From positions 7,097,751-7,161,750 of the forward strand of contig OZ037773.1 in assembly GCA_964035545.1 (NCBI GenBank): a stretch of 64,000 nt of DNA, written 5' to 3'. Every line of letters starts with the position of its first letter. Positions within the stretch are counted from its first letter, which is position 1. The notes under the pieces are model-generated. The model ran no database searches and was not told the DNA's origin. It saw nothing but the letters and a program-made list of their open reading frames with translations. Below are positions 3,835-64,000 of the stretch, one piece after another. A program made the translations under genes and the position numbers. Source of the stretch: Bugula neritina. Taxonomy: Eukaryota; Animalia; Bryozoa.

Positions 3835-3906
3835 AAGTTAGAGTAGTTGTGTTAGACATTCTCTTGTAGCTACAGCATCTCATCAGCTTTACATAGTCCT
3901 CCAAAG

Positions 3907-12275: not shown

Positions 12276-13142
12276 CTTTACATCCCAAATATTGTTTGCA
12301 TGTGACTCAGTATAAATCTAATTACTACAATTGCTGACAACCTACTCAGCCAGTATTAACATAGTCAGATGTGTCTTTTTTGATTACCAGAGTTATGATA
12401 CTCACTTTCTGGACTGATGTGTAACCTCATTATTCAATGTTTTGTAGCGTTCAAATAAATTTATGTTATCAAACACAGCTACTGCTTTGGTTCTAAGATA
12501 TTTTGAGTAGGTATAAATAGTTTAGTGTCCAATGAAAAGCTTCAAAGCTTTTTAATAAAAAAGAAAAAATAAAAAAAGAATATAATGATATAACATAATA
12601 TAATGAAAAATGATAAGTTGCTGCAAAGATATCTAAAGCAGTTGAAAATCAAATTTTTTAAATGTTTTTTATCTTATAAAAGATTGATCAAAATGAGAAA
12701 ACAGTTATTGTGCATATGTTGAGTATTTAAAAATTTCCTAGTTTGCTAAACTTGTAACAAAGCTCCCATCTTTGATGAAAAATTCTCATACAATCACGCC
12801 CTGCAGGTGGCAGTATTTTACTAATTGCAGCTGAATAAATCCTAAATAATTGGCATTTAAGTTCAGTGTTTATTTCTCAAAAGTAAATATTATGTAATAA
12901 TATTATTATTTACTAGAGCTGGGAAGCACTTACACTGCTTCTAATAACTTTTAATCTAAGGATTAGAATGAGTTTAGATTCTCAGTACATCTAGACCAAA
13001 GGCACTGCTGAAAAGGAACAAGCAATCTGTTTACTTTGAACCTGCTTTAGAACCTGCTGTATATAAGTAGTGAGCACAGCTCAGCCTACACCTTATAGTG
13101 CTTCTGATTTCACTGTCTCACAAAGGATTTCACTGACTAGTA

Positions 13143-15065
13143 ATGGGTAAGAATATCTTGTGAGTCTTTCAAATTCAAAAAAAGAATAATGTATGGCAGC
13201 TGTTAGTATTTTTTCATTTTTATATAGCATACATAATTTTATTATCATTATTCAACTTTTTATTCTTGTTCAATTAGTTTTTTAAAGGAAAAACTAGCAA
13301 ACTTTGTTTTACATAAATTCAGCATACAACTTTTAGTAGCAGAAAGCTGGAGTCTAAAACAGTAAAGCTATATTTATATGCTCAGCATTTAAGTTTCTTG
13401 GCTTCATCCAAGACTTAATAATAATAATGTAGAAAAGAGTTATTTATCATGATATAGTTATATGTTGTTGTAGATAGAATGAGTCTCTTCTCAATGCTCT
13501 GTTTTCTGGTAGCTATTCACACCACTCACTCTGCAAGTCTCATCAAGTATGGACCATAATATCACTAGTTACTTGTGTATTAGTTTTTTTTATTTATGAG
13601 TATAAGATGGGAAATACTGCATATAATAGCCATATAAAGGTGACTCAAGTATAATGGTAGAAACAAAAATAGTTACATGAACACATCACTAGCAAGAAAT
13701 ATTACAATGTAAGACATGGTTGCCTTGGGTAGAACACATTTGTATTACTGTTGATACTAATGTATACCATGGTGTAACACATGTGTAGTACTGTGTAACA
13801 CATGCGTAGCACTGTGTAATACATATGTAGTACTGTATAATATATGTGTAGTACTGTATAATACAAGTAAGGGAGCAGCCGTGGTCTAGGGGTTAGAGCG
13901 TTCGCTTTGGGAACACGAAGTTGTGGGTTCAAACCCCGACAAAGGCCATTGGTGATGTTAGGAAGAGCATCCAGTCATAATTGCTTCTGTGCCTCATTTG
14001 AACGAGTCCTTAGCCCGTTCTAACAAAAACCCTTTCTATCAGGGGTTTCTCACAGGGATAGCGACTATAAACTTACGTGAGTTTTCTTTTGTATAATACA
14101 TGTGTAGTACTGTATAACACATGTGTAGTACTGTGTAGTACTGTGTAATACACATGTGTAGTACTGTATAATACATGTTTAGTACTGTATAACACATGTG
14201 TAGTACTGTATAACACATTCGTAGTACTGTGTAACACATGTGTTGTACTGGTTTGCAGGAAGAGGTCTCTACCAGCTCCATGTTCAGCCACCTTAAGATC
14301 CACACTTGACGCCCCTCTTGTACTGTTGGAGACTCTGAATCAGGATTACATTGTATGTATTTTTTGGCTCAGAATCTTTTCAGTTTCTAACTTTAAAAGC
14401 AAAAATAGAAAAAAAATTTATTTGAAATTATTTGAAAGAAAGATAGAGGTAAGGTAATAACTGTTTTACTGAGGCTATAATTACCAGGAGTTGCATAACC
14501 TATCATATGAAGCCCATGGGAAAACTAATGCACAATTATTACAAGGGTGTTACTTATTTCTGAAATTTCTATCCCATCAGATAATTACAGATCAAACAAA
14601 ACCCTTGTCTTGATGTAAAGTATAATTACTGAAAATTGTTTAACTAATGCACTTTTCTACAAAACAGTTTTGTTTTAAGTTTATCCAATTCTGGGGCTAT
14701 GTATACATGGAGTTGTCTCCTTTTTTATTTACTGTGATTACTATTATTGCTAGTGCTACTAGTTCATACTGGAAACTTCAGATAGAGGAAACCAGTATTT
14801 GTTGTATGTACAAGTAGTCCAGGATGTCTAAAAAATACTGATTGTCTTTTCATGCAAGAATTACAAACTACTTTTGTAAAAGTTCTGCTTTTTTAAAGCA
14901 TTTGTCTGCCTCAAACATAAAAGAATTTGGTGCTTAAAAATTTTAACTATTATTTTAAACAATATTTTAGGAAGAGCATTTCTGCACAGAAGTGAATCAA
15001 CATCCAGTCCAAGTAGTTCGGAATATTACCTGCGGCTACTTCAATGTAAGTAAAGTTACCTGCAG

Positions 15066-15162
<97 letters not shown>

Positions 15163-16114
15163 CACACGCACACACGCACACACGCACACACGCACACACG
15201 CACACACGCACACGCACACACGCACACGCACACGCACACACACGCACACACACACATGCACACACACACATGCACGCGGGCATATAATTACTGTATGGCT
15301 AGTGCCTTTATCAAACTGTAAATTACATCCTGCTTTAAGTCAGTGAAATAATAATTTTTATTTACTTTTAGTATATAGCAGCCCGGGGAGATTTGGCACG
15401 CAAACTGGATGAACACAGATGCATGCTGCAAGAAAGTTTCCCCTCTAATGATGTCCACAAGTTTGGCAGAATGGCAGCGTTCAGTGAACTTATTGATGCT
15501 ATCATCTCAGCCATAGATGAAAACGAAACAGGGGGCTGTGACAACTCTGCCCTTTACGTAAGTATTCTATATATGTAGACAGGGATACCATGGGAAGTGC
15601 TGGGGTAGTTTATTATCAACAGGAATACTGGGGTAATTTATTATATGCAGGGGTTTTTGTGTAGTTTCTTATATACAAGGATACTGGGGTAGTTTATTAC
15701 ACACAGGGATGTTAGGAGAGTTTATTATAGGGGGGGGGGGGTGGGGGGTGGGGGGGGTTATTGGGGTAGTTTATTATATACATGGGTTTAGGTCTAGTTT
15801 ATTATATACAATGATACAGGGGTAGTTTATTATAAACAGCTTTTTTCATAGATATTTACATTAATTAAAATCATTGATTTAACTCTGTTGAAGAATTATG
15901 CATAACTCAACAGAGTTACATCATGATTTATCTAACGATTTAGGTGAACAGAGTGAATGAAAGTGGTTACAACAATGTCTATCACAGCCATCTTGTACAC
16001 CTGTATGATGAGATATTGTGCACTAAGACTTCTTGTGAAAGAGAAGGTGGTCAGCCTGATGAAGAGCCCTTACTCTCTAAACTCCCTGTGTATATAAGAT
16101 GTCAAAGTAACTAA
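13143..16114 (+). CDS. Secreted 8-Cys helical protein, paralog 3 (200 aa)
   Basis: Exons 13143-13146, 13474-13546, 14259-14352, 14971-15045, 15372-15557, 15944-16114; 603 nt. [208 protein letters not shown] at 13060. Confidence 0.9.
13770..14250. repeat. About 21-bp minisatellite (gtagtactgtataacacatgt), interrupted by a SINE
   Basis: Units at 13770-13865 and 14090-14250; source of the MCYTVLH-repeat ORFs. Confidence 0.9.
13871..14085 (+). mobile_element. tRNA-derived SINE, near full-length copy
   Basis: A-box TGGTCTAGGGG and B-box GGTTCAAACC, then a body (ggtgatgttaggaagagcatccagtcataattgct) and tail (caggggtttctcacagggatagcgactataaac) shared with the copies at 10300 and 59745. Confidence 0.88.
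15067..15275. repeat. Compound (CA)n/(CGCA)n microsatellite in intron 4 of paralog 3
   Basis: Visible directly. Confidence 0.97.
15590..15835. repeat. Degenerate ~29-bp minisatellite (ggggtagtttattatata core) with a poly-G tract
   Basis: About 7 degenerate units; G-run at 15730-15757. Confidence 0.75.
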
Positions 16115-18501
16115 ACTATGCCCCAGAGGAAAGACAACTCTACTTAGTGACTGCTTGTTGTTATTTAACAAATTTATCAATTTATTTTTGATCTAATTTT
16201 ATACTTCAACTTTGCAATGTTGAATAGCTGCTATTTCTATTAAAGTAAAAATAGTTTGTTTATATTTCTAGTTTATGTTTATGGTATTAATCTAGCTACA
16301 AATGCACTAGAGTCTAGACTATAATAAAAATTAAAAGAATTGCATCTGCATGTATATATATCTCAATTTATTACAGTCATGACAGAGAAAAGTTTAATTA
16401 TATCGAAACTTAGTGACTAGGTCAATACCTTATATTATCTTGAACATGCTGATTTAGAGCAAGTTGTCTATTTGTTTATATTCAAAACTTGAACAGCGGT
16501 CTCAATAAACTCAATTTCTTGATATTTCTCTGAATAGCATTCGAAGTACTCCAGATTAAAAGTTCCAGTTTAAAATTTTGACAGTCTGAAGATGTAAAGC
16601 TGTTTTAGTTAGAAGAATATAAGTTATGTTAACACGGGACATTTGATCTGCACCCCAAATCAAAAATTTATAATAATATTAAAATAATCTAGGCTACACA
16701 AAAAAGTTTAACTTGTGTCCTAAATTAGAATGCGTTGAAATTAAAAAATTAGCTACTGAAACTTCCCAGTTTTGGCACTTGAACGAAATGTCTAGTAGAC
16801 AGTCTTGTGCAGTTAGCTAAAAGTAGTGTTGAAATAATGTTACATAACCACCTAAACTAGTGCCTTGTTTAATACCATCACAGCCAGATTAAAGTATATT
16901 TAACTGCACTGTGCACTTAGAAAATGAAACTTTAAAGAACAGAGTATGAAAAACCAAATTCTAACATTTACCAGCACATGCTTTGCACAGCACTAGATGA
17001 AGTATGGCTTATAAGTTTCATTAATTATTTTCAGACTATTTGCTAACATCAGTTGTGTATTAGCATTGATCAAGTATTTTGAAAAGTAGACATAACTTTC
17101 ATAAATAAAATCTCCTTTTGATAATTTATCGTTAATCAAGAGCTAGGAGGAAAATAACATTTCTGACCAAGGATCCTTTGGGTAATATTCTATTTGGTTC
17201 ATCCATTTGACAAGAGTTGAAAGAATCTCATCTCCATGCTGATGGCTAAAACTTTAAATCCCAAAATGCAATTTTTTTGCAAAATTAAATTAACAAATCT
17301 TAGCCTGAATGAAACTTTATTTTATAGACCAAGATGTTGACAAGTAATTCATTAGAAATGTACTATTCTCATTGTATCCATTCTAGTCATTAAAAGTAAT
17401 TTATGTATCATAAGAAATGCTTGTAATTTGGATATATAGAATTTAGGCAGTCAAAAAAGAAATTTAGCTTGATTTAGTCACTTAGAAAGTATTTTCCTTT
17501 ACATTTAATTTGATAGTCTCAATAAAAAACAGTTTATTGCAAATATTTTTCTGCACCATTTGAGGCATGAACCATCCCTTATAATGACTAAAACAACATC
17601 GTTATAGCTAAAAACTACACATTTTAAATGTGGCTACATTTACTTTGTGCTCAATCTTTTCCCACCAACATAATATTAAATATCTTGTTTACTTTAACCA
17701 GCTAGGTATTTCTATACCAGTTTACAATAAATATAAGCCGAGTGCATTTTTGCTCTCATTCTTTAGATTAATTATGAATTCAACTGTTTCTGAAATTTTC
17801 TTAGCAAACCAGCTTTATATTCTCACTTTGATTATCTTCTTAAGTTTGTAGGTGCAGTAATAGAAAAATTTAGAAAAGCCAGTACACTTTGTTGGAAATG
17901 TAGCAAAAGAAGTTATGCTCTTTTGAAAATTTCAACTCCCAAACCAAAATTTATTAAAAAAGTTTAAAAGTTGTAGGCTATTAAAATTTCTTTACTGTTG
18001 CACTTGAAGTTCGCTAGTTTCAGTTTTGCTAGTTTTTTATCTCTTGACTATGGAAGCCGTTAGCCAAACCAAACAAAAATGAAGTAGTAAACAAGTTTCC
18101 AAATGCACCTATTAAAAAGTTTTGTCTGCGGCTGTTGCTATTATCTAGGTACTAGGACATGTTCTCTCAGCTCAGCGGTTTAGTGCAGGTTACTTAAGAG
18201 ATAGATATCTATTACCTTTAACTTCTGTTGTAAATATCCCAATGTCTTTTGTAATTGAAAGGTACAAAGACATCATTATCTAGCAACGCCATGGAATAAA
18301 TGCAGTCATTTGGTCTAATTTATAGACATATGGCGGTGTTTGCATACTGATTTAAACACCTTTATTACCATGGATGATAGGTAACTCATTTCTACCAGTT
18401 TTCAGGTATAAAAGCTGCTTATAAATACTGGAGTTCAGTTATTTACAGCTAGCTGTTGGGTCTTTTAGCTTCCTGGTCATATGCTGAATTGGAAACTAGC
18501 A

Positions 18502-46424: not shown

Positions 46425-49373
46425 CTGCAAAGTTAATAAAAGAAAGATTAATTTGCAAGATTGTTTAAAAGAGATATAATAAACTATGATGCTAAACAAA
46501 ATACTTCAAAATAAGTGATGGAAAACAGTTTAAGGATCTCTCATAACTTAATAAAACCTCAGCCAATAAGTCATTAACATATATAGTTTAGAATCATTAC
46601 TTCTTTTCTTTATTACAGTAAAAATATTTTATGAGTTAACTATGATAGGTTTTTAATTTAAATATAATATTAGTTATTCAACCATCAATTTGTTCTAAGC
46701 ACGCAAAATGGTAGAGTATAGAAATATTCCATGGGTATGCAATGCATATACAAACACTGAAATTAATGAAAAGTATTCTTTTACTTGAAACTCATTGATC
46801 AAATTTTCTGTAGAACTCCTCTGCTAGTTCAGTGTAAAGGTCAGTATCCATGTCTGTCTGTTTGTCTGTCTGTTTGTCTCCTCTCAGGTAAAATAAACAT
46901 GCACTGGTTCTTGAAATGTCTTTTTTTCTGAGGTAAAAGAGCATTTTTTCTTTGAATGTAGAAGAGCATTAATGTCAGGTGTATTCTTACCTTCGCGTTT
47001 ATTCTTACTTCGCTCTGTAAAAGATTGCATGTGAGTGGTATAATAAACTATAATACAAAACAGAAAACTTCAAAATATGTGATAAAAAACATTTCAACAT
47101 TCTCAAATAATTTTAATACTTATTCCTGCTTAAAATAAAGCTTTGAAATAACAAAGCCAACCTCCACACATCTCCAATGCTGTGTTGATCCATGAATGTT
47201 ATCTTTTTTATGCCCGTAGCCTCTGTATATGAGGTTGACTCCTCGGCCCTTTTTGATGACTGTTGTTGGTTCCATGATAAAGTATTGATTACTAATAGAC
47301 TTTTATATTTTATAAAGCCTTTTATAGCTTTTTTTATAAACTAAAAAATTAAACTAAACACATAAAACATGTAAAATATTGCTACTTGAAATTTTTTTGA
47401 AATATCACGCGTGCATGGCAAACACATTCTTTCTTGCATAGATTAAGTTTACCTGATAAAAATACTTAATAAAACAAACTAAACTCAATAACTTGTAGCT
47501 AATTAGCAATAATTAAAAAAGATGTAATTACTTTTTCAAATTATACTGAATAAACATATAACATATAAGAAAAAAAAGTAAAAAAGTTTAAAAACTTAGA
47601 ACTGCATGTTGGCTCAATTTCTATGGATGATAGATATGCTTAGCTGGGATTTTGCTTGTCTATTGCTGACCTTATAGAGATGCTTCTTGAAATGTCTTTT
47701 ATCTTTCGAAGTAAAAGAGCATTTTCTCTTTTGTGAACTGATCTTGAGTGTTTGTAAACTTTCTTTGGATGGTGAATATTCTTGTAGAAGCATAGCTTGC
47801 ATTTCGCTTGTCTATTGCTGACGTCATAGAGATGCTTCTTGAAATGTCTTTTTCCTTTTGAGGTAAAAGAGCATTTTCTCTTTTGTGAACTGATCTTGAG
47901 TGTTTGTAAACTTTCTTTGGATGGTGAATATTCTTGTAGAAGCACAGCTTGCATTTCACTTGTCTATTGTCGACCTTATAGAGATGCTTCTTGAAATGTC
48001 TTTTCTCTTTGGCATAAAAGAACATTGACAACAGGTATATTTTTCTCTGTGAAAAAAAATAAAGAAGATCAATAGTTGAAAAATGCATAGAGGCCCAATT
48101 TCTTGGGATGATGACAACTTCATGCTTCTGTGTTTTTCTTTAGATGTAGTGGTTGGTTAAGTTGTTGACCAAATCTGTTGGTAACTTTCCTTCTTGCATG
48201 AAATAATAAAGGTTAAAAATTTAAAGTTCCATTTTAATGTATATAGATTTCTTTTATAATTCTTTTAAGTTTTTGAAATAAAAAAAGCATCAGTTGTTAT
48301 AGGTTTATTTTTGCATGTATTAATAGATATCAATTAATTAAAATACATGGTGGTACACTTTCTGGTTTAGCCTCACTTCAGCCTCTCAACTCAGTGCCCT
48401 AGTCTTAAGGAATATGTATGTATCTTTGCTGGTCTTCAAGTTAAACAGTGTGTCGTTGATCGCTTTCCTTAATGAAGAGTTATGTCCACATTGTAATGTA
48501 AAGCAGTCAGTTTCAACTCAGATATATCTTTGAAGCTTATTTGGAAATTATTGTTTTTCTTTTTTTCTAATATCTCATCTATTTTTCTGCTTACAGCTTC
48601 TTAGCACAGCTCATAACATTTTATTTTTGGCTCTGCAAAAGTTAGCAACATAACTATTTGCTTTCTAAGGTTGTGTTAAAAATAAGTAATAAAATAGAAC
48701 AATAAACTAAACATTTTTCCAATGATCTTTTTGATTGCTGTTTGCAATCATTGGCACCCAGTTTTTAAATAATAAATGTTTCCCTAAAAACATAATATTT
48801 GGTTCTTTTGGTGTAAACTCTTTCGAAATTATACCCAAAATGTTGTATGTTTTCAAGTGAACTATAGTATAGATGGAACATACAATAATTATACAATGTT
48901 AGTGAAACTTGGTATTTTTGAGAATCATTGTTTTGAGTGCAATGCGTTTGCTTGATTGATTGTTTTTTATAAAGATGAAGTAGTTTATTGATTCAAAGCT
49001 GTTGAATCTAATTCAATTTATCTCTAATTGAGTATTTGCAACTGTTAATCATTTACTATGATTAGTGACTGCTCACTCTGCATGACTTGTTCTTTTTAGT
49101 TTATTTATACTCTGAAAATAACTGATAAACAGCTCAAATAAAATAATGGTTTAATGACTTAGTTTTAATACAAAATTTTTATAAATATCAGACCTTTTTC
49201 ACTATAAAAAGCATTTTATGCCACAATATGTTCACAGACCTGTTGGCTAGATTAGATTTCAAGCTCATAAAAATTAAATCATGGTTTGATTGCCAAAGAG
49301 ATTATGTGCCTAGAAGCTCCACGGTTTCTCATCACAAGCTGGAGAATCAGCACCTGGGTACCTTTCACTTCCG

Positions 49374-49582
49374 TCACAACTGAAGCTCTCCTTTGTGAAC
49401 TGATCTTGAGTGTTTGTAAACTTTCTTTGGATTGTGAATATTCTTGTACAAGCACAGCTTGCATTTCGCTTGTCTACTGTGGGCCTTATAAAGATGCTTC
49501 TTGAAAGTTTTTTTGTCTTTTGAGGTAAAAGAGCATTGACGGCAGGTATATTCTTCTCTGTGTGGTTTATTCTTTTTTTGAT
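49374..49582 (-). CDS. Intact-looking exon encoding two C2H2 zinc fingers (likely source of the 152-bp satellite; may be pseudogenic)
   Basis: ctttgcag acceptor followed by QKKNKPHREEYTCRQCSFTSKDKKTFKKHLYKAHSRQAKCKLCLYKNIHNPKKVYKHSRSVHKGELQL* (C-x2-C-x12-H-x4-H and C-x2-C-x13-H-x4-H). Upstream exons not identified. Confidence 0.45.
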
Positions 49583-51335
49583 CTGCAAAGTTAGGAAAAG
49601 AAATATTAATTTGCAAGATTGCTCAAAAGTAGTATAATTAACTATAATACTAAACAGAATACTTCAAAATAAGTGATGGAAAGCAGTTTAAGGATCTCTC
49701 ATAACTTAATAAAACCTCAGCCAATAAGTCATTAACAGATATAGTTTAGAATCATTACTTCCTTCTCTTAATTACAGCTAAATTATCTCATGAGTGAACT
49801 ATGATAGGCTTTTAATTTAAATATAATATTAGTTATTCAATCATCAATTTGTTCTAAGCACGCAGAATGTTAAAGTATAGAAATCTTTCATGGGTATGCA
49901 ATGCATATACAAACACTGAAATTAATACAAAGTATTATTTTACTTGAAACTCGTTGATCAAATTTTCTGTAGAACTCCTCTGCTAGTTTAGCGTAAAGGT
50001 CAGTATCCATATCTGTCTAATTATCTGTCTGTTTGTCTCTTCTCAGGTAAAATAAACATGTACTGGTTATGTGCTGATTCCAGCAGCCTTAATATAGTTT
50101 AGAAAAGTAGCTAGCTGTTGTAGCCACAGGTTAGCCAGCATTAATTATATGTAATACAATGAGTCTGGATAAATCTAGCTGTGTGCATGGCTATATGAAA
50201 AGTCATTCTAGCTGTAACAGCCTTGACTGAAGTAAATTTGTTCCCCTCCCCAACCCTTCCTTAATTATGGTAACAGCAGATTTGGAAACTGCTGGACTAA
50301 TGTTTTCTTTTTCTCTCTACTATTCATCATTTTGGTCTAAACTTCATCTTTACAAGACATGCACTCTATAGTGTTGGTATTTTGGTCTTAAAAAGCTTCA
50401 TGGAAAACATCTCTCTTTTTGTTGAATAAGTTAGATTTTTTCCCAACACACTGGCTCTTTCTAGAATCTCAGAATTTAGAAATTTTTTCAGCAACTATAA
50501 ATACATCTTTTTGTTAAAAACTGTTTTTCAGATTCATTAGATTTGTAGCTTCTGTACCTAAAAAGCTATATTCACACTATAAAGGGTGAAATTCTATTAG
50601 CATTATGTTTTTTATAAATCAAGTAAACCCTATTATAATTGTATAACATGTTTTTCTTTTTTTTTTTGCAGATTTTCTGTGTGTTTTTGATAACTTTTGT
50701 TTCAAGGTCAGGCTATTTCACTCTACATAACAATATACTACAGAACTGTAGCTGAATGTCTCTTCTTTATATTGAATTCTACTCCTAAAGATCTCACATC
50801 TACATACCAACAATGTCTTTGTAGTACAGCTTCACCAGTTGCAGATTAAGTGAGTATTGGTTTCATTTAATTTAAATTTTGACACTTGTATAAACTTAAA
50901 CTATTTTAAGTCATAGAAACTATTATGCTTTAAGTTGTCTTCTCTTGAATAGCATTTTTAGTTCTCAGATAATAGAAATTAATTTAGCAGAAGTTATCAG
51001 CTCTTGCACCACATTGTTTACATGTTTGGTCAGTTTAAATTGCTTTAGTTACTAATAAAATTCAGGTTGTCTTCCCTATAGATAATTTGATTGCAGCACA
51101 ATGTTCCTTATTTGCAGAATTCTGTCAACTCTATTTATGACAAAAACATTCTAAATTCAAATTCACCAGATGATACATAAAGCAAACTAAACTAGCAGCT
51201 ACATTTTGAATAAAAACCAACTAATATCAACAATTGGCATAATATTCTCACTATGATTATTATCAGCAGCTATATTGTTAGAAATCCAATTTTATTTAGT
51301 GTTGTGAATAGTCTCAATCTTCTCTTGTAGCACTA

Positions 51336-51939
51336 TTATCGTGTATAGCAAATACACGCATAGCCTTCACAGTAGCCTGAGCCATAACCTCTGTGGCGAC
51401 AATGACTTCTACACAAATTTGGACGATCAGGGCATCCATGTGGTCTGGGCGGAGCTACACCTGTGAAGTATATTGAGTCAATATGGTTAATTTATTCTTA
51501 GTGGAAGAATTTGCAGCTGGTGATGAGATTCTGATAATTGTAAAACATCTGCTCACACGAGACTCGAACCAGAGACCTCCAACAAATATATCGGATCAAT
51601 ATGGTTAGTTTAATCACAGCATAAGAATTTAGTTATATACATTGAAACTGCAGCTGGTGATGTGAGTTGTAAAAAAGTTGCTCCCACCAGGACTCGAACC
51701 ACGGATCTCTAACAATGCACGTTGATGCTTGCTAACCATTACACTATGGGGGCGACTGGGAATTCCAACACTACAGCAATCAAACTGTAGTTTAGACAAT
51801 GGAATAATAGTTGTACTTTATCTGATTCTGCTCTTTTCTTACCTGACCAGGGCACACCATCCATTACAAAATCAGATGCAGCTAAGTTTAGAAGAAGAAA
51901 GATTAGAGCAGCAGAAATGATTAAGTGTGGGTTCTTCAT
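51336..51939 (-). CDS. CS-alpha-beta (invertebrate-type) defensin precursor, 73 aa
   Basis: Coding exons 51939-51843 and 51460-51336, phase-1 GT-AG intron. MKNPHLIISAALIFLLLNLAASDFVMDGVPWSGVAPPRPHGCPDRPNLCRSHCRHRGYGSGYCEGYACICYTR. Signal peptide plus C-x6-C-x3-C-x9-C-x4-C-x-C with HGCP start and GYC motif; AATAAA at 51296-51291. Confidence 0.92.
51545..51753 (-). mobile_element. Degenerate tRNA-like element plus a partial duplicate in the defensin intron
   Basis: Minus strand 51753-51679: GCCCCCATAGTGTAATGGTTAGC...GGTTCGAGTCCTGGTGGGAGCA followed by a T run. T and anticodon stems are mismatched; a second B-box copy lies near 51550-51580. Confidence 0.6.
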
Positions 51940-52809
51940 GCTAACTTCTGGAGAATATCAGCCTATAAAATAATATGTTACTTTGACATTTTCGGGTCAA
52001 ATATTCAAATGGTAACACTCGTTTTAATATTTCACTCCAGAAGTGGTACAGTTTTACTAAATGCAGAATTTTTTTGTTTATTAGATAATCAGAATTGACT
52101 TGTGTTGTATAGACTGCTAAAATACTTGCAATTTTTCAGTTTTCACAAAATCACTTTTGATATATATAGCTTTTATTCAACAATTTGTAAGTTTTGTTTT
52201 TATATATTGTCAATGCAAGATTTAAAAATTAAGCATCTCTATTTTTAAAACTTTTAATTTGTATTGACCCAATTACTAATGTTTAAACTTTAATTTTACT
52301 AAATCCTAAGGACAACTTCTGTGTTGAAAATTTTTAACTATGTTAAATTTTTCAATTTTAGGAATTAATTTTTTGTGCTGTTTTTACTTGGTTTTACTAA
52401 TATGAATATGGATTTTTTAAAATTACAAGTGTCAATGTCATACATTTATTTTAATCACAATAAATTTTGAAGTCAATGGAAAAAAAATTTGTTTTTAGTG
52501 TATTTGAAGTACATGAATATTGAGTCAAAATATTAGAATCGAAAGTGAAGTTGCACAAAAACAAAAAGAAAATCAATTGAAAATTTCCATTTAAATTATC
52601 AGCTTACATATACTGTTGGCACTAGCTACATAATGTATATCTTTTAAAAACTTGATATACTTGTTAAAGCTGTGTTTATTTAAATTGATTTTTTGCAATG
52701 TGAGTTACTATTTATATAAAAATCCTACAAATAATATACAATATACAGATAAAAATATAATATAATAAATACAAATAATATTTGCATACTGCTTTCTTTA
52801 CCTTATTAC

Positions 52810-52883
52810 CTTTGTCTGTCATCTGTTGAAGATTTCAGAGTTATGACTTGCTGTGGCAAGCAGAAGGTTACTCTGCTTTTATA
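52810..52883 (-). promoter_or_regulatory. Defensin TATA box and candidate 5'-UTR exon
   Basis: TATAAAAG at 52883-52876; AAG|GTAATA donor at 52810; ttttatag acceptor at 51962, 23 nt before the defensin ATG. Confidence 0.6.
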
Positions 52884-53571
52884 AACCTGAAGCCACATGC
52901 TTATAAATGGTACATGTTGTTCTATAGATCACTAAGCTTTGCGTTTTACGTGAAGAATTGTTATAAAAACGTGAATGACTAATGGAATTAATGCCAGTTT
53001 TGTCAAAATTGAAAATTATGCTAGAAAATATTTCTTTCTACTGTTTATCAGCTACAATAATGAGACATATTTCCCAGCGTGCATACATAACTTGTGTAAT
53101 ATTCATGAAGTTCTGAAGTAGCCAAACCACGTAACAATGAACAGGTCACGTTTACCTTACACTATAGCAAATTCACATATTCAAGCTTTGTCACATCTTG
53201 TTAATTCTAACTGGCAAATTTCCATGCACTTTATGCATATATTTGGTTCTCCACGTAGGTCAATTTTATGTGGTATTTAAAACATGATGAAGTATAGCAT
53301 GCCCAGTAAAGATGAAAATTGCTTTACTGAAACAGGAGCCTAATCATAATTTTATCTTGGGAGCATTTTCTAACCAGTGTCTGTTATAGCAATTAGTGTG
53401 AAACTATTGGTAGGTTATGTATGTTTATATAATACTATTTCTAATAATCTAAACAAACAAGCTATCAACAGAGAATTTTTCAGCAACACTGAAATGTAAA
53501 CTGAACAGCAATTGGCTACTAGTAAACCAGAATCCCCAAATAGAAGTCTTCTGTTAATAAAATAACAATAA

Positions 53572-53949
53572 AGGCTTGGCCTCACGCTCGTGGGAGTCAC
53601 ACGAAACTCATGTGACGATTTTCTTGAGTTATCCTCTCGTTATGATCAGCCACACACTCGTCGGACACATAGTAAATAGTTCGTGAATGAGTGTTGCACG
53701 TGATAAACAAACAGCAGAAGATTGCCAAACAGAGAAACATGGTAGAAATGAAACAATTACTGTTGCTAAAATTCCATTGACCCAATCAAATGGTGCTTAT
53801 CGTTAATTTCAATTTTTCATCCAACATCTTCGTTGGGTGCACCCAACAAAAACGATTTCGTTTTAATTCCTTCAAATTTGATCATACGTTTGTGTTTTCG
53901 TGTTAAATAGACGATTTCGTGTGACTCTCACAAGCGTGAGGCCAGGCCT
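53572..53949. mobile_element. PIF/Harbinger-type MITE
   Basis: TIR of about 35 bp (aggcttggcctcacgctcgtgggagtcacacgaaa / tttcgtgtgactctcacaagcgtgaggccaggcct) with a TAA duplication at 53569-53571 and 53950-53952. Confidence 0.85.
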
Positions 53950-54223
53950 TAAAGTAGTAGACTGTTGGGATATTTACTAATATACCAATACACATTCTGT
54001 TAATAATGTCACTCTTCAGAGTAATTAGGACAAATTGCTACTGCATGTGGCTGGTCAATGACCATTCTACAATACTTATCAGTAGCAACTTTGTTTAAAA
54101 GAGCTTCAAGTTCAAGTTTCATTTTGAACAGCTAATCTATTTATAATATTATTATAAATGTATTTAAGATCCTGTAAGCAAGTACCTGTAAGCAGATTAT
54201 GTATGGTACTTCCACCGCATTAC

Positions 54224-54390
54224 TGGAATATTTCTATAAGCAGCTCAGAGTTGGGGTGAATTAGTGCAGTAGTCTACAGTTTAGTCGAAGATAATTTGGA
54301 AATTAGAATCAACTTCAGCTCTAAACCCTAGAACTGCAAATTACTGCACTTACTCCTCCCCCAACTCTGAGTTGCTCTTAGAACTATCCA
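54224..54390. mobile_element. Palindromic (hairpin) MITE, copy 1
   Basis: ttctataagcagctcagagttgggg ... ccccaactctgagttgctcttagaa inverted arms; a related copy lies at about 57500-57662. Confidence 0.7.
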
Positions 54391-55172
54391 CAGCACTGCA
54401 CTAATTAGCCTGGGCTCAAACTAAAAAGTAGATGAAAGCTTGGTTAGTCATTACACGTTCCCCCAAGTATAATTGATGAGGTGGTAGAACTCCTATAGCT
54501 GTACTAAAAGAAAAGTGGTTACTAAACCACTTGGAAGACACTAGATTAGACTTGGAAGATATTCTTCCAAATAAATTTGACAGACTGCATTTCCTATTTA
54601 ATAACCTTTTGTCAGTTTGTTATCAGCGACTAGTTTATTGGCTACTAACAACTGGCCAACAGTGTAGGCTTAGAACAAAGCTATTCTCCTATTTTCACTA
54701 AAATCCAAACTTTCCCAAATCTTGTTTCTTCTTGTACCACCATGACTGGTTCGCTTCAGCATATCTATAAATTTCATATCTATTTATAACTCAAAAATTG
54801 TAAAAAAATTTCAACCTAAGTTGTGGCTGATACATTATACAATTATTTGTATTTGAAGTGGAAGGTCAAAGGTTATTCGCACAGGACATGCAACTTCTAA
54901 CAAGTGCGTTACCCTATTATGTAACCTTTTGTAGCTATTTTTAGTTTATAATACATTGGTACTTGTATATATAGTAACAGGGTAACAGTTATTCTAGCAG
55001 CTGCTGATGAGTGTTAGAAGTAGCATAGAATCTTGTCAATAACCTCGTATTCACCAGCTAACCTTGCCCAAAGCTGCCTATAAGACTACACGATGCCTGC
55101 TGTCAGGATTATGATGTCATCACCTCACTAGGTCTTGGAATTATCTGCTTAACTTATTGGTAGTCTGCATCA

Positions 55173-56467
55173 ATGGTAAGTAACAATAGCAAGGCTATAT
55201 AATTTGATTTATTTAGAGTTTTAGGGTGTCATGAAGGTTCTTTGTAACAGTTGACTTTTCATCAGCAAAGAGAATTGATAGCTATCTAAGCTTGAGCAAG
55301 CTAGGCTGCATAAAAAGGTTCAATTTTCACTTTGATAATAAGTATACTTTACAAAACTGATGAACAACTTGTAGTCTATAATCGTTAACTTTCAACCTTT
55401 TAAGATTTATCATCATTAACCAGGCATACTTGATTATAGGGCTACCGCAACTCAATTAGGAAAATAGGAAATACTATTTATCTAAATTTATATTGGCTTT
55501 ACGAAACATTATAGATAGATATAGGAAAGTTAGGTCTGTAAGCTGGGCTTGGTGTAAGCAGTATCAGTTTACATAAGCTTGTCCCCTGGCAGCTGTAACT
55601 GCATCCATAAATTCAATACACTCCTGCAGTACGTTATTAGAGTCATATTATTGTGGTGAATAAATTCTGATGACTCTGGAAATTTGAGGCAGCATTCTTT
55701 GGAGGCTCTACTTTTGAAAAAAATCCTCCTGCACTTTGTTTTGAAAAGAACATTTGTATTTCCAACTAATAGCATAAGTTTTGTAAAAAAATATTATAAT
55801 CTGACTTCTAGTTTATATAAATTTACTTTACTTAGATATTTTGCTGTTGAATACTTAGCAAATGTTTATTGCCTAGTACACATCGGCTATAATATTAAGA
55901 CAGTTGAAATAATTTTTTTTCACAATTTTTTAAGCAAAACATTATGTTAGGAAACTGTAAATCATTAATTTAATTAAAATTTTTGTGTTTTATGTAATTT
56001 AATTATATATACATACACTGTAGCAAAAAGAGACAAGCTTAGAGCCGTGTACCACAAACCAAACAACCACAGAACAAACTACAGGAGAACTTCTTCAGCC
56101 ATATGAAGTTATCTGCTCATCCGCTGTAGATCTCTACGCCGACCTTGACATCGCCTCTGCGTATCATAGCAACTGTAGCCCTGACCTATCAGAGAGATAT
56201 GATGACACGTCTCAGTCTAGTGTTATTCGGGAGTCGTCTTTCACTTCTCAGTTTAGTACAAGGGGAAGCAACTTATGCAATAAAATCAGACGCTGCTATT
56301 TTGTTGTGCCTCTAATAGTCATGTTTATCCTTGTAAATATTATCTCTTTAGGGCTAATAGTGGGATGTATAGTCCATGAGGAGACCTGTTTCAAACTTAA
56401 TAATAATACTGCTAGTAAAATATCTTCTGTTGGAAAGAAATCAAACCAAAATACAATAAATTGGTAG
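55173..56467 (+). CDS. Small single-pass (type II) membrane protein with cytoplasmic ITAM-consensus motif, 148 aa
   Basis: ATG|gtaagt at 55173-55175 spliced to a 444-nt stop-free exon 56024-56467: MQKETSLEPCTTNQTTTEQTTGELLQPYEVICSSAVDLYADLDIASAYHSNCSPDLSERYDDTSQSSVIRESSFTSQFSTRGSNLCNKIRRCYFVVPLIVMFILVNIISLGLIVGCIVHEETCFKLNNNTASKISSVGKKSNQNTINW. TATAAGA at 55079. The 3' end is uncertain. Confidence 0.7.
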
Positions 56468-57499
56468 CTTGAAGCAGTGTGACCTGATTCGAACAGCCAT
56501 TTTGTTGCTTTTAATTGCTTCATAACTGGAGTAGTAAAATACTTTATACATGTTACCACAGTTTTGTATTTTCTCCTTTTTATAGTATATTTACTACGGC
56601 ATGCTATATGCACAAAATCAGTTGAATGTAATTATTTTGAATTATTTGTGACCTGTGTTATCTTATGTTAACATCGTGATTCAAAAATACTGAGATAAGG
56701 CAGTTAATAAAGTTTTTTTGCAAAAGTAAAGTTGTTGAAATATGTTTTGGTTGGTTTAATTTTAAATGAAGGTTTTTTTATACAAAATGGATTATTTTAT
56801 AGGAAATAAGAAAACTGCTCATGGCTGAATAGACTCTTAGAAACCATCTCTAGTTTCAGTAGTTTGTTTAGGATAAACCAGTGGCTACCAAAAATGTAAA
56901 GTCAAGAGGGGCAACTCCTGTTTCAGCAAGCTGCTCTCAATCTGACTACGCTGTGTGGCTGTGCTCTTACTTTCAATCAGTCCAGAAAACACTAACTAAA
57001 ATCATTCCTTGGGACTTTTAATAATACTGGGAAAGACACTGCACAGTTGTGCTTATGTGGGAAATAAGTAATAACAATAAAAATAAACATTTGATTCATT
57101 TTTTTCCTCACAAATGTAAATTTATGCCAACAGCTTTAGCTAAGGATACATGTGCAATCATATTATATATTACTATGACCATGAGTTGGATAAGTGCAAC
57201 ATTCAGCCACCAGCCATCTAATTCATTCCTGTTATGTCAATTGCATCAAAGATATATAATATGCGACACCAGGTCTAATTAAGTTGTGTCTGGGATTTAA
57301 ACTTTTTAATATCAGTTTTGAAGCTTGTAAAGTAGCATGCAGGAAAAAATAACAATTAGAAATATAGCATCAAGATATGAAATGCAAGTTGCTATAATAA
57401 CGAGAGTTGTACAACTATTTTCAGAAGGGCGCATTCAGCACTTCAACTAGGATATTTTTTAAAATTTATTCATAAGTTATAAGGGTAAACAAGATGAAG

Positions 57500-57662
57500 G
57501 GTTTTATAAGCAGTCTTAGAGTTGGTGGTGAATGAGTGCGACAGTTTGGAGCTTTTGAGTTTGGAGTTGGGGACTTTAATAAACCCCAAGTCTAAATTTA
57601 AGAGCTCCAAACTATTTCACTCAATCGTATTACCAACCCGGGGCTGTTTATAGAATTATTCA
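57500..57662. mobile_element. Palindromic (hairpin) MITE, copy 2
   Basis: tataagcagtcttagagttgg...agtttggagct / agctccaaact...ccaacccggggctgtttatagaa; same family as 54224-54390. Confidence 0.65.
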
Positions 57663-57678
57663 AGCAGATATTATAGTT

Positions 57679-57877
57679 CATGGGTGGAAAACTGTGGCCC
57701 TTTGCTCCTTTTCCAGTGGCGCTCTTAATGCTTAAGATGCGTTCTGATTAGCACAGCATAGGTTTGGTGACCAATTGCTTTATTATAATAAAGTTTACTA
57801 TGAATGCTATCATGTGGCCTTTCATTTTGGCTGACATTTGAACTTGGCCCTCATGCAAAAGAAGTTGCCCATCCCTG
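57679..57877. mobile_element. hAT-type MITE
   Basis: CATGGGTGGAAAACT...AGTTGCCCATCCCTG termini with a perfect 8-bp target-site duplication TTATAGTT (57671-57678 and 57878-57885). Confidence 0.85.
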
Positions 57878-59459
57878 TTATAGTTAGTTGACGATCCTAG
57901 CTAGACGAGACAGTCTATAAAAAGACAGCTGTGAGTTACTATTATAATAGCGAGCTATCGAAGATATTTAGAACACTAAACACGGTCAAATTTTAGATAT
58001 TCAACTTTTCTCCTTTATAATTGTACCAAAACAGAAATGATTATTTTAAGTGTAACCACTCACACTGAATTAGAAATATTTTCCAGCTATAACTATTACT
58101 ATAGATTAAGACTAAGCACCATATTATTTGTTATCATGGTGATTAGTTGCATATCATCTGTGATCATACTGCTACTAAACTAATAATGTACTTGTTCATG
58201 TTTTATAGTAGAAATATTTCATATTTATATTAATATTCATATTCATATTGGTGCTACTTACTACTCAGTTACCAGTTATTGTTATTGTATTTTAAATTAT
58301 TATTTTATGTTAAATTCTTAAAGTTACTAAAACCAAAGGTGTCGCACTAACTAGATTGCACTTATAGTTATTAATTAAAAGTAAACCGATTATCACTGCA
58401 GCTATTAAATGTAAGTTGATTATCATGTTGAAGTTAGTCAATGTTATCTAGTTATAAGTTATGTTGAAAATTTGAATTTAAAATTAATCTTAATAGTCAT
58501 CACACTCAAATTTAGTGAGAAAACTCAAAATCTTTAGATATATTTGACTTCATAGCTCGACAAAGATGTAAAATAATTATGATGGTAATCACTAATGTTG
58601 TTTAGCCTAAAACATAATTTTAATAGCTAATATGTGTGCAATTTTAATCAGTGTTTTAAGTAATAGCTATTTTCTTTCCTACAGTTACAGCTGTAAAACA
58701 TCCTAACTTTCACTTTGACTGTAACTTCTTTTGCAAATGCTGAATGTGAGTTAAACAGTGAGTGTCTGAGTTTATGTTTTTTTTTTTGGTTATTAGGTAG
58801 TTATTGTTCTAAACTTAATTAAAGCCAGTAAAGCTCAAACTGGTAATCCTCAAATTATTGTTAGTTACTAATTATCACTAGTAACTCCAGCGCTATGTTT
58901 GAGTATGAACTTTTTGTCCCACAGTTTTTTTTTAGTGAGTGGTACAAAAGTTCATTGCTTTGCTGTAAAATAAAGCAGAAGATTTGCTAAATCTGTGAAA
59001 TACTGTTGAAAATAGCTTGCTACAGCTTTGAGTTGCAACTCACTTCTCATCTCAATCTCTTAGCTCAAGAAACTCTATGGTAACAGTTGAATGCAGTTTG
59101 TGCTATGAATTTTAAAATCTGCTGTGATTTTATTTTACCTCTACTGATTTTATTTATAATAAAAGCATATAGTCTAGATGTGATTTATCAAATAGACCAG
59201 GTATGTCATAAATAGTCTACTTGAAATTTGATAAGTGGCTCTTGTTGTGGGCTTTAAAGTCGTATCATGACATATCTTTACTTGAAGTTACATTACTGCT
59301 ATGACAGTATCTCGATCTGATAGAGTTCTAGCATTTTTATTGAGATTTTCTGATAAGTTTGTTCAAGGTAACATATTTAACTTGTTGATCCTACTGTCAC
59401 ATGTCTGTACATTTTATTTTTCTAACTTTATATATAAATATTTCTTGCTTCCTTTTAGA

Positions 59460-62400
59460 ATGTTGTGGAGGTTAATCTGGGTGGTAGTTTTATTATCTCT
59501 AGCTGTGTCTGCAGCTTCTGAACAGCCCAACATAATCTTCATAGTGGCTGATGACTACGGCTGGAATGACATTGGTTATCACGGAAGTGAGATCAAAACT
59601 CCAAATCTAGACAAACTCGCTTCTGCCGGAGTGAAGTTGGATAACTACTATGTCCAACCCATATGCACACCAACTCGCAGTCAACTTATGTCCGGTGTGT
59701 TTGTATGGCTACTGCTGATTGTGTTGTGTGATGTTGAATTTGATAAAACTCATGTGGGTTTATAGTCACTATCCCTGTGAGAACCCCTGATGGAAAGGGG
59801 TTTTAAAGCAGGCTAAAAACTTTTTTGGTGCAGCATAGAAGCAATTATGACTGGATGCTCTTCCTAACATCACTGTGATGTTTGGAGTTGAACCACTGAC
59901 CTTGTGTTTACTAGACCAGCTCTCTAACCACTGCTTCTTTAAAGTTACATTTTACAATAATATTTATTTTATTTGCTTATTTGAATATATATTGATTTAT
60001 ACTAGGACGGTACCAGATACATACGGGGCTGCAGCATGGAATTATATGGCCTTGTATGCCTAGTGGTCTACCATTGGATGACCCAACAATGCCAGATAAG
60101 TTGAAGGAAGCTGGATATTCTACACATATGATTGGTTAGTATCTTTGTAATGTTTGTACAATCTGGTTATTTAATTTAATAATATTTGTTGACATGGTGT
60201 TCTAGTTGAAAATATTTTAGTTGTAAATAGATGTTTATATATTCAGGTAAATGGCACCTCGGTTTCTATACTAAAGATTACATCCCAACTTCTAGAGGGT
60301 TTGATAGTTACAGTGGATATTTAACTGGCAGTGAAGACTACTATTCCAGAATGAGGTTACCAAGTTTATGTAGAATATGTATTGTATTATATGTTGTATT
60401 GTAGAACATGTGATGTATTATATGTTATATTGTAGAATATGTATTGTATTATATGTTATATTGTAGAATATGTATTGTATTATATGTTATATTGTAGAAC
60501 ATGTGATGTATTATATGTTATATTGTAGAATATGTATTGTATTATATGTTATATTGTAGAATATGTATTATATGTTATATTGTGGAATATGTATTGTATT
60601 ATATGTTATATTGTAGAATGTGTATTGTATTACATATATTGGGCAGACAACTCTAATGTTGACATAATGCATAGTTTTGTAGGTATAATAATTAGTCCTC
60701 CTTGCATACGTAATCATATAGCTATACACCATCTAGTGTAGACAGTTCTGCTCTCTTATAATGGTGAGACAACTCCTTGCATCTAGTTATATATATGCGA
60801 GGCTTGTCCAATAGCTGTTGTATGCTTTCTTTGGGCTATAGATCTAACAATGGCTTTACTGGACTAGACTACACTGTCAATCAAACAGGGCGAAACGATA
60901 CTTATGGTGAATACTCCGCCCACCTCTTCACCAGACATGCTCAAACTGTCATCAGTAAGTAGTTATGTAATACTTTATCAGTTCAAAGTTATGTAACATC
61001 ATGTGATGATGCCGGCTGACATTCATGATGTCATGACTCAAAGTTGTTGTTAGAGTTTAGACTCTAGAATCTAGATGTATAATATTGTGCAAAATTGACT
61101 AGTTGATACTGTAGCCATATAGTTCTTAATTTTGATTGGTTTATAATTGCAGGGCACGCCCACCTTCAACAATAGGCCCTAACTAGCGCTGTACATATTA
61201 TACCAGCTTTGTAGCTGTTTTAATATTTGTAACAACGTTAAATGCTACTCTTATTGTTTCTTTTCACAAAAGTTACTTGATTGTTTAGTATCAACTCCAT
61301 AAGTAACTACATAGAAGTCACCTTCCACTTAATATGTTCTCTGTTGAACTGCTCTCCATGTTTATTGAATAAAATGAGAGATATACACTTGAAACACTGT
61401 CCAGTGCCTCAGGTGAAACACTGTCCAGTGCCTCAGGTGAAACACTGGGCAGTGCCTTAGGTGAAACACTGTCCAGTGCCTTAGGTGAAACACTGGGCAG
61501 TGCCTTAGGTGAAACACTGGGCAGTGCCTTAGGTGAAACACTGCCCAGTGCCTGAGGCAAACGCTGTCCAGTGACTCAGGTGGCTGGTAAAACCTTCTGC
61601 CATATTTTTTTACCCAACAATTCAGAGAACTGTGTGTATCTTTCTGTATTAATTAGCAGCATGTTGTCTATTGTGTTACAGCCACTCATGCTGCTCAAGA
61701 ATCGTCTCCCCTTTTCCTGTACCTGGCATTCCAGAGTGTCCACAGCCCTATGGAGGTTCCTGAGAAATATGAGAATATGTATTCCAACATAGAGGACAAG
61801 TACAGACGTATATATGCTGGCATGGTATCAGGTGTGTCTTCCTTTATATACCTGTATACCTGTATACTATATACCTGTATACCATATACCTGCATAATAT
61901 TTACCTGCATACTATATACCTGTATACCATATACCTGTATACTGTATACCTGTACACTACATACCTGTATACTGTATACCTGTATACTATATACCTGTAT
62001 ACCATATACCTGTATACTATATACCTGTATACTATATACCTGCCTACTGTATACCTGTATACTATATACCTGTAGCAATGGACGAAGCAGTAGGCAATCT
62101 CACTCAGACTCTGAAAGATTCGGGTCTCCTTGACAATACTATCCTCGTCTTTACCACAGATAACGGTGGCCAGACCCTGTCAGGAGGTAACAACTTCCCA
62201 CTGCGAGGTCGCAAGGCTACATACTGGGAAGGAGGTATGTATTACGTTCCCTCTCTGTGTTAGCATATCCTCTGGTACTGAGCCTAACTTTGTGGACTGT
62301 GTTGCAAACTGCAGCTAACAGTTTCTATAAATGTCCATTGTGGTAGCCTCTGTGCTTTGCTTCTAGGTGTTCGAGGTAACGGGTTTGTGTATAGCCCCCT

Positions 62401-63890
62401 ACTCAAGAACCCTGGCTCTACTAGTAAGGAACTCATGCACATCACTGACTGGTACCCGACTTTAGTAAAGTTGGCCGGAGGTTCTATGGCCGGCACCAAA
62501 CCTGACGGCTACAACGTCTGGGATTCTATCAACTTGGGAGCTCCTAGTCCTAGAAAGGTGACACTTTTACCTGTAATACTAATAGTCCTAAAAAAGTGGT
62601 ACTTTTACCTGTAATACTGAAAGTCCTAGAAAGGTGGTACTTTACCTGTAGGACTGATTACTCTATGAATAATAAGCTATTATATTACTAATATAATATG
62701 AATAATAAGTTATTATATCACTGCAATGTAACAAGTTTATAATTTGTCAAGTTGTATTTTATTTAATTTTTTATTCATCTTATTTTCTTTTGATTATATT
62801 CTCTTGTAGGATATTTTGCACAACATTGATCCAATGTATAAGAAAAAAGGCAAGTCTGTTTCTAAAGTGTTTGACACGTCTGTTCAGGCAGCTTTGAGAC
62901 ACGGCGACTGGAAGATTCTAACTGGTGACCCTGGCTTTGATAGTTGGGTACCTGAGCCCACTCTTTATAGTGACTGTGAGTGTAACTCTTTATATTGTGA
63001 CTGTGAGTGTAACTCTTTATATTGTGACTGTGAGTGTAACTGTTTATAGTGACTGTAACTCTTTATAGTGACTGTGAGTGTAACTCTTTATAGTGACTGT
63101 GAGTGTAACTCTTTATAGTAACTGTGAGTGTAACTGTTTATAGTGACTGTGAGTGTAACTCTTTATAGTGACTGTGAGTGTAACTCTTTATAGTGACTGT
63201 GAGTGTAACTCTTTATAGTAACTGTGAGTGTAACTGTTTATAGTGACTGTGAGTGTAACTCTTTATAGTGACTGTGAGTGTAACTCTTTATAGTGACTGT
63301 AAGTGTAACTCTTTATAGTGACTGTGAGTGTAACTGTTTATAGTGACTCTTTATAGTGGCTGTGGGTGTAACTCTTTATATAGTGACTGTGAGTGTAACT
63401 CTTTATAGTGACTGTGAGTGTAACTGTTTATAATGACGGTGAGTGTAACTGTTTATAGTCACTGTGAGTGTAACTCTTTGTAGTGACTGTGATTGCGACT
63501 CTTTATAGTGACTGTGAGTGCAGTCATACTAGTTTAAGTTACATTTGTGTCAGTATACAGTTAGAGTATTGGTAAACTGTAATTTGTTTCCGGTGGAGAT
63601 GTTGTGGTAGCCAGATTTCTAGAGAATCTTGATTAACTGCATTAGGCTCATTAATGCCTTCATTGCTTGTATTTGCAGCATGTTTGTATTATATTTAACA
63701 TTTATCATATAGATGTACATATGTTGTGTGTATAGTAATAGACAATGCAAGGCCAATATAACAAATAGCCATGTACATGTTTTATGCTACAGATTCCAGA
63801 AGGTTTAACGACTCATCCAATACCAGTTCCAGCAGTGATCAGAATGTGTATCTCTTCAACATAGCGGAAGATCCTACTGAGCATTTTGAG
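59460..63890 (+). CDS. ARSB: Arylsulfatase B/I/J-like secreted or lysosomal sulfatase (3' end beyond the window)
   Basis: Exons 59460-59694, 60006-60134, 60247-60355, 60842-60954, 61682-61831, 62076-62234, 62367-62557, 62810-62975, 63793-63890 join in frame. Signal peptide, [12 protein letters not shown], formylglycine motif [73 protein letters not shown]. Exact orthology to ARSB is not established. Confidence 0.93.
59745..59937 (-). mobile_element. tRNA-derived SINE, copy in sulfatase intron 1
   Basis: Reverse complement matches the body and tail of 13871-14085. Confidence 0.85.
60370..60632. repeat. 31-bp minisatellite (gtagaatatgtattgtattatatgttatatt)
   Basis: About 8 units in a sulfatase intron. 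Confidence 0.92.
61391..61582. repeat. 24-bp minisatellite (gaaacactgtccagtgcctcaggt)
   Basis: About 8 units in a sulfatase intron. Confidence 0.93.
61846..62075. repeat. 15-bp minisatellite (tatacctgtatacta) filling a whole intron
   Basis: About 15 units running up to the acceptor AG at 62074-62075. Confidence 0.93.
62545..62657. repeat. 38-bp triplication spanning a splice donor
   Basis: tagtcctagaaag|gtgacacttttacctgtaatactaa repeated three times. Confidence 0.85.
62960..63520. repeat. 25-bp minisatellite spanning a splice donor (actctttatagtgact|gtgagtgta)
   Basis: About 22 units; the first unit overlaps the end of exon 62810-62975. Confidence 0.93.
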
Positions 63891-64000
63891 GTGAGGTCGG
63901 GGGCGTGTGTGTAGACTGAGTATAATGTAACTACACCAGTACTCCATATTTCTCCAACACTATCTAGTTATTGTCTGTATGAACTACCTCCACAGATATA

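Follow-up and report, generated by a model that had tools for sequence, protein, structure and literature searches.

DAP12 (TYROBP), FcR-gamma and CD3-zeta are small single-pass proteins with a near-zero ectodomain and a Yxx[LI]-x7-Yxx[LI] motif on the cytosolic side, and a predicted protein of Bugula neritina resembles them in these respects, its motif lying on the predicted cytosolic side in the assembly studied here. It differs from them in its predicted N-in orientation, in having neither a signal peptide nor an acidic residue within the helix, and in the lack of both homology and a conserved first tyrosine. Dectin-1 (CLEC7A) and CLEC-2 share with the Bugula protein an N-terminal cytosolic tail, a type II orientation and one conserved YxxL, but the Bugula protein has no DEDG signature, no C-type lectin domain or other ectodomain, and no homology to them. 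LAT, NTAL, PAG and LIME likewise combine a minimal outer part and juxtamembrane cysteines with a disordered cytosolic domain holding several conserved tyrosines; these proteins, however, are N-out and bear Grb2 or Csk motifs on a long C-terminal tail, whereas the Bugula protein is reversed and has no such motif class. BNIP3/NIX, FUNDC1 and, more loosely, yeast Atg32 are tail-anchored autophagy receptors with an N-terminal LIR in a disordered, acidic, Ser-rich domain. By prediction, the Bugula protein likewise has a disordered, acidic, Ser-rich cytosolic N-domain with an acidic-flanked aromatic-x-x-aliphatic core (DLYADLD), and a lone helix close to its C-terminus that leaves a short tail on the luminal side, but there is no sequence homology and the motif match is a four-residue pattern only.

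The locus lies in a window (the whole stretch of DNA analysed, 64,000 nucleotides) that spans positions 7097751-7161750 of contig 9 of a B. neritina assembly. The assembly, searched here as 216,009,554 bases in 321 contigs, has been described as 216.00 Mb with 9 chromosomal pseudomolecules (PMC11480708). The window is AT-rich eukaryotic DNA with a GC content of ~32%. The original prediction held that a lone ATG, followed at once by the donor GTAAGT, supplies the initiator methionine to a stop-free, GC-richer exon of 444 nt, and both of these sequence elements are indeed present (Table 1). Exon 2 is open in one forward frame, the other two containing 10 and 16 stops, and the codon immediately before it is TAG. 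It is the sixth-longest stop-free stretch in the window, and its GC content is 39.4% versus 29.6% in the intron. Its translation reads in part ...GELLQPYEVICSSAVDLYADLDIASAYHSN...NKIRRCYFVVPLIVMFILVNIISLGLIVGCIVHEETCFKLNNNTASK...INW*. Compared with a second B. neritina assembly, the intron is 89.4% identical over aligned sites with 76 gap columns, and its acceptor is TAG in the window assembly and CAG in the other. The context of the start ATG is weak, with T or C at -3.

Table 1. Features of the locus and of some sequences elsewhere in the assembly; positions refer to the window unless a contig is named.
Feature	Position	Strand	Remark
TATAAG, TATA-like hexamer, ~90 nt 5' of the ATG	55079..55084	+	Identical in both assemblies
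Start codon ATG, the whole coding part of exon 1	55173..55175	+	Same start in GenBank model EB796_019001
Donor GTAAGT directly after the ATG	55176-55181	+	ATG and donor both kept in the other assembly
Intron, 848 nt, GC 29.6%	55176..56023	+	Acceptor AG at 56022-56023
Exon 2, 147 sense codons (56024-56464) plus TAG (56465-56467)	56024..56467	+	Phase 0 after the ATG
Codons 21-28, GELLQPYE (window) versus EEFPQPCG (other assembly)	56084..56107	+	Replacement cluster including the first ITAM tyrosine
ITAM-pattern match YEVICSSAVDLYADL, YEVI-CSSAVDL-YADL	56102-56146	+	Fits Yxx[LI]-x7-Yxx[LI]
KIRR basic cluster, cytosolic juxtamembrane side (predicted)	56282..56293	+	Cys85 and Cys91 on either flank
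Transmembrane helix, 27 residues (91-117), CYFVVPLIVMFILVNIISLGLIVGCIV	56294..56374	+	Hydropathy; AlphaFold2 helix
C-terminal tail, 30 residues (24 in EB796_019001), plus stop	56375..56467	+	Predicted luminal/extracellular
Sequon N127-N128-T129	56402-56410	+	In C-terminal tail
AATAAA hexamer, ~240 nt past the stop	56706..56711	+	Kept in both assemblies
SH2 matches	contig 7: 14371513-14371671 and 14374073-14374225	+	Domain matches
Tyr-kinase matches	contig 7: 14376762-14377601	+	Domain matches
Kinase matches on small contigs (examples)	C33:18549-19265, C37:1067-1798, C66:415702-416457, C176:33222-33977, C183:13502-14260		

The flanks of the gene contain candidate control elements. The TATAAG hexamer is a possible core promoter and the AATAAA hexamer a probable poly(A) signal, shortly past which the alignment between the assemblies decays. 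The next gene downstream, a sulfatase that starts at ~59.3 kb, lies ~3 kb away and is separately annotated in the other assembly. Both assemblies also keep a six-codon upstream ORF (ATG ATG ... TAG; 55112-55132), 58 nt 5' of the proposed start, which either is a uORF or precedes the transcription start. Farther upstream, a gap-free block with ~90% identity between assemblies (52830-53134) has several overlapping open frames, none of them coding-looking, and is blank in Rfam; it may be a regulatory element upstream of the gene.

The two-exon model is not new, being already public as the GenBank hypothetical protein EB796_019001 of B. neritina (GCA_010799875.2), which has 142 residues and is 91% identical to the window copy across 141 residues. 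Since EB796_019001 begins M-QKETS, the same one-codon first exon is used in both models, and its contig, VXIV02002815.1, runs collinear with the window for 19 kb or more. The claim that the gene had been missed by the ORF track is correct for the program-made track, but GenBank already carries the same model for another assembly. The gene models of that assembly were predicted by AUGUSTUS, which was given transcriptome hints (PMC7576161). The copies are the same gene in the same neighbourhood, yet EB796_019001 has CGVI for YEVI, 13 replacements in total and a stop six codons earlier, where CAA is changed to TAA at 56447-56449. The older sample, from Virginia, was genotyped as type S (PMC7576161). 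Type S is said to be common in the UK, the collection area of the other specimen (PMC11480708), and the UK specimen is likely also type S. Both assemblies bear the name B. neritina, yet they differ by ~11% substitutions at aligned intron sites. This local divergence reflects either extreme allelic divergence at the locus or different cryptic species.

Because the two assemblies are so divergent here, their comparison is informative about constraint. We compared 15 kb of sequence (window 48785-63994 with 3819-18346 of the corresponding locus on VXIV02002815.1), over which the median identity of 300-bp windows, gaps counted, was 0.83. The windows over exon 2 were gap-free with identities of 0.933 and 0.947 and, together with one window in the sulfatase gene (0.947), were the most similar of the stretch compared. 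Exon 2 as a whole is 93.7% identical between assemblies with zero indels in its 141 shared codons (423 bp); with 0.0137 indel events per bp in the flanking non-coding DNA, an indel-free stretch of this length has a probability of about 0.003. The constraint estimate comes from a single pairwise comparison with 26 substitutions, of which 13 are synonymous and 13 non-synonymous (dS 0.155, dN 0.040, dN/dS 0.26), which is a deficit of replacements relative to the neutral expectation (binomial p = 0.0015). Omega falls along the protein, from about 0.83 in codons 1-30 to 0.20 in codons 31-89 and 0.13 in codons 90-141, which cover the helix and tail. The original two-exon model is matched by the independent AUGUSTUS model and supported by the dN/dS and the indel-free coding sequence, and we consider it quite likely, from the comparison of the assemblies, that the locus is a real protein-coding gene. 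An antisense ORF at 56299-56631 was rejected, as a 16-bp indel breaks its frame in the other assembly.

Homology searches with exon 2 as query found a single relative. A Pfam scan with E up to 10 gave no family, and HMMER phmmer against 1.84 billion representative proteins returned EB796_019001 alone, as did a word-based protein search. A protein search of its own genome for paralogues gave two matches (E 1.7 and 3.6), both of which were rejected, and an Rfam scan of 50-59 kb found nothing. The gene is thus probably single-copy and found only in the B. neritina lineage, as far as these searches indicate. Several other identities were considered and dismissed: the best ESM Atlas score (0.76, for a CLLAC/dynactin-associated cluster) is at the level of shuffled sequences and without Pfam support; PDB sequence matches, including cubilin and LC3A, have E of 1 or more and are noise; and by inspection, prompted by a Bcl-2 expansion nearby, AVDLYADLDI lies outside the Phi-x3-Phi-x2-Phi-small-D register of a BH3 motif.

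The predicted protein has one Kyte-Doolittle peak, which reaches 2.8 over residues 91-117, and elsewhere hydropathy never exceeds 1.0; as there is no second hydrophobic peak, no signal peptide is predicted. The original prediction correctly described the KIRR cluster, the tail of ~30 residues with an N-x-T sequon and a hydrophobic helix that includes Asn and Cys. The helix measures 27 residues, contains Asn105 and Cys115, has neither Asp nor Glu, and shows one conservative change (V113M) between assemblies. Counting 15 residues on each side, the charges are +4/0 on the N side versus +2/-2 on the C side, from which the positive-inside rule yields an N-in orientation with a predicted cytosolic N-terminus. 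A single membrane helix with N-in topology, also proposed at the outset, is accordingly backed as a prediction by the hydropathy peak and the charge flanks. In the N-domain (~90 residues), acidic residues outnumber basic ones by 13 to 7, and Ser and Thr together make up 29%. AlphaFold2, given a two-sequence alignment, assigned pLDDT below 50 to residues 1-82, with a weak helix at 34-46, and modelled residues 79-134 as one long helix (maximum pLDDT 84); in this model the N-domain is predicted to be disordered. Cys85 and Cys91 could be palmitoylation sites. With ~10 residues between it and the helix end, the sequon asparagine is rather close to the membrane for glycosylation to be efficient.

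These properties are those of tail-anchored proteins, in which the helix lies about 30-40 residues or less from the C-terminus: the signal peptide is absent, the single helix occupies residues 91-117 of 147, 30 residues follow it and the predicted orientation is N-in. With so few residues after the helix (24 in EB796_019001), the protein is predicted to be tail-anchor-like, its orientation and insertion route both being predictions. A helix so near the C-terminus would still be in the ribosome tunnel at termination and would be inserted post-translationally.

The original prediction was exact as to the YxxI-x7-YxxL motif itself, and the predicted cytosolic part does contain Yxx[LI]-x(6-8)-Yxx[LI]. 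Its two halves differ in conservation between the two assemblies. The first, YEVI (56102-56113), is CGVI in the other assembly, with TGT GGA in place of TAT GAA (Y27C, E28G), whereas the second, YADL (56135-56146), is identical in both. The unconserved tyrosine belongs to a cluster in codons 21-28 that holds 5 of the 13 replacements and zero silent changes (permutation p = 0.010). On this comparison, the first tyrosine sits in the least constrained, possibly diversifying, segment of the protein, and the conserved block appears to start directly after it. The pattern is also frequent by chance: shuffling the 89-residue N-domain produced it in 0.5% (x6-8) to 1.1% (x6-12) of cases, and 13 instances, several of them in repeats, occur in the 18,455 residues of six-frame stop-free stretches of at least 60 codons in this window. 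Extrapolated roughly to a proteome of ~20,000 proteins, hundreds of such matches would be expected. Since the first tyrosine is a cysteine in the sole other known copy, the exact ITAM pattern looks like two Yxx[LI] motifs that were paired by chance and whose pairing is not conserved. The locus illustrates the ease with which the Tyr/Ile/Leu-rich translation of an AT-rich genome yields an exact ITAM pattern, and comparison with a single second assembly was enough to tell the constrained YADL from the unconstrained YEVI.

The reading that we favour, and rate somewhat better than even, is that the locus is a lineage-restricted, single-copy, two-exon gene for a tail-anchor-like protein in which the ITAM is fortuitous and the conserved YADL acts as a single motif. 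The product would be a 148-residue single-pass protein of the tail-anchor (short type II) kind, with its acidic, Ser/Thr-rich, disordered N-terminal 90 residues turned toward the cytosol and a helix, 30 residues from the C-terminus, that would be inserted after translation. Its constrained part would begin after the first tyrosine and take in CSSAVDLYADLDIASAYHSNCSPDLSERYDD, KIRR with its flanking cysteines, and the helix. The protein would most likely act as a membrane-tethered docking platform, on which the conserved DLYADLD would serve as the working single tyrosine motif, alongside Y47, Y59 and an acidic/Ser stretch, SPDLSERYDD. Three roles for DLYADLD would fit equally well, namely a YxxPhi sorting signal, an acidic LIR-type core [WFY]xx[LIV] and a site for one SH2 domain; each is proposed at the level of pattern. 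A sequence that fits the LIR-core pattern with acidic flanks is present and conserved (SSAVDLYADLD), but as a four-residue match it is non-specific and comes without homology. There would be no doubly phosphorylated ITAM clamping a tandem-SH2 kinase.

Other explanations differ from this reading on whether the exon is coding, whether the protein is complete and what its tyrosines do. The exon might be a non-coding conserved element, or an untranslated exon, that is stop-free in both assemblies by chance. Such an origin would agree with the failure to find a homologue outside B. neritina, with a low ESM Atlas recognition value (1510) and with the dependence of the frame on a one-codon exon in a weak start context, there being no internal Met ahead of the helix. 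It is nevertheless rather unlikely, given the dN/dS and the significant deficit of replacements, an open frame confined, in both assemblies, to a single one of the three forward frames, the absence of indels despite a high local indel rate, the rise in GC at the exon, the kept splice sites and the coherence of the hydrophobic helix with its charge flanks. It had also been suggested that GTTG|GAAAGA near 56432 is a dead donor and the gene a truncated type II receptor whose ectodomain exons were lost. The type II orientation and very short outer tail do resemble the stalk of a lectin-like receptor, but the site is not donor-like in either assembly (TCTGTTGGAAAG and TCTGTTGGAGAG), GTTGGA being a poor donor in both, and no ectodomain exon lies downstream: none of the stop-free stretches of at least 45 codons at 56468-59300 is coding-looking or conserved above background, the alignment of the assemblies collapses at 56735-57334, the exon is blank in Pfam and the sulfatase is a separate annotated gene. 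As no coding-looking or specially conserved stop-free stretch was found at 52.0-55.2 kb or 56.5-59.3 kb, and given the collapsed alignment, nothing points to additional exons or a lost ectodomain, and we regard truncation as very far-fetched.

The remaining alternatives assign the protein to Syk signalling. A candidate gene of the Syk/ZAP-70/Shark family lies on contig 7 (14371513-14377601, plus strand), its matches falling within ~6 kb. Compared with solved structures, its kinase exon matches human SYK (4e-28) and ZAP-70 (5e-26), behind one multi-stretch EGFR entry and ahead of Eph and JAK kinases (~1e-21), and the best matches of its second SH2 exon are to ZAP-70/SYK (7e-11 to ~1e-10). This gene makes an ITAM mechanism feasible in the animal and is uninformative on this protein. 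The original proposal was a receptor-less ITAM adaptor, in which a Src-family kinase would phosphorylate both tyrosines for a tandem SH2 clamp by the Bugula Syk/Shark homologue. In its favour are the exact pattern with x7 spacing in the window assembly, the predicted N-in topology that places the motif in the cytosol, the kinase gene itself and an ITAM-Syk link reported in another lophotrochozoan, via a receptor tail of the oyster protein CgIgR (PMC6994640). The conservation of both tyrosines was checked on one comparator, be it orthologue or allele, and there the first is a cysteine and the second is kept, the surrounding eight codons being the most replaced part of the protein. The pattern is moreover common by chance, no homology to known ITAM adaptors was found in Pfam or among the 1.84 billion representative proteins, the orientation is opposite to that of DAP12, FcR-gamma and CD3-zeta, and the helix offers no acidic residue for receptor pairing; a functional ITAM adaptor is thus very unlikely. 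If the ITAM were functional, it would represent a receptor-less, reverse-oriented adaptor in a lophotrochozoan and would bear on the origin of Syk signalling before adaptive immunity. A hemITAM- or TRAP-like adaptor is unlikely too. Here Y38 (in YADL), Y47 and Y59, with the juxtamembrane cysteines for raft targeting, would recruit single-SH2 proteins, or Syk would bind to a dimer in which each chain contributes one YxxL, the mode known from CLEC-2 and Dectin-1. This proposal fits the identity of YADL, Y47 and Y59 in both assemblies (segment omega 0.20), the position of Cys85 and Cys91 beside KIRR at the predicted cytosolic face, a type II orientation like that of hemITAM receptors and the presence of a Syk-family gene. 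It is weakened by the missing tri-acidic DEDG signature (SSAVDLYADL has one Asp, at -2), by the lack of a ligand-receiving ectodomain or known partner, and by the absence of YxN or any other specific SH2 class motif, the evidence being at the pattern level. Overall, it is improbable that the protein recruits Syk in any way, whether as an ITAM or in a hemITAM-like mode. We give very little credence to the further idea that this is a young, fast-evolving, Bugula-restricted immune adaptor, in which gain or loss of the membrane-distal tyrosine between lineages or alleles would form a natural switch between ITAM and hemITAM-like states and the cluster of five replacements would reflect diversifying selection, not relaxed constraint. 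What remains, a tail-anchor-like protein with a single conserved YADL, is the picture of a small membrane protein of an ordinary kind, restricted in its taxonomic range and present in GenBank as a hypothetical protein, whose orphan gene is under purifying selection.

Some further features came to light in the course of these comparisons. Ladders of off-diagonal BLAST matches to the corresponding locus on VXIV02002815.1 point to tandem repetition at two places. The array at 45.0-48.1 kb is long, has a period of ~150 bp and underlies a minus-strand gene with a faint TSP_NTD match in the other assembly; the second, at 62.96-63.52 kb, is of short period (~25 bp) and falls within the region of the sulfatase gene. 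Elsewhere in the assembly, protein-kinase matches that are full-length and intronless occur on dozens of small contigs; they contain many in-frame TAA/TAG codons but almost no TGA (examples in Table 1). This codon usage suggests a ciliate-type genetic code, and these contigs may therefore derive from an epibiont or a contaminant.
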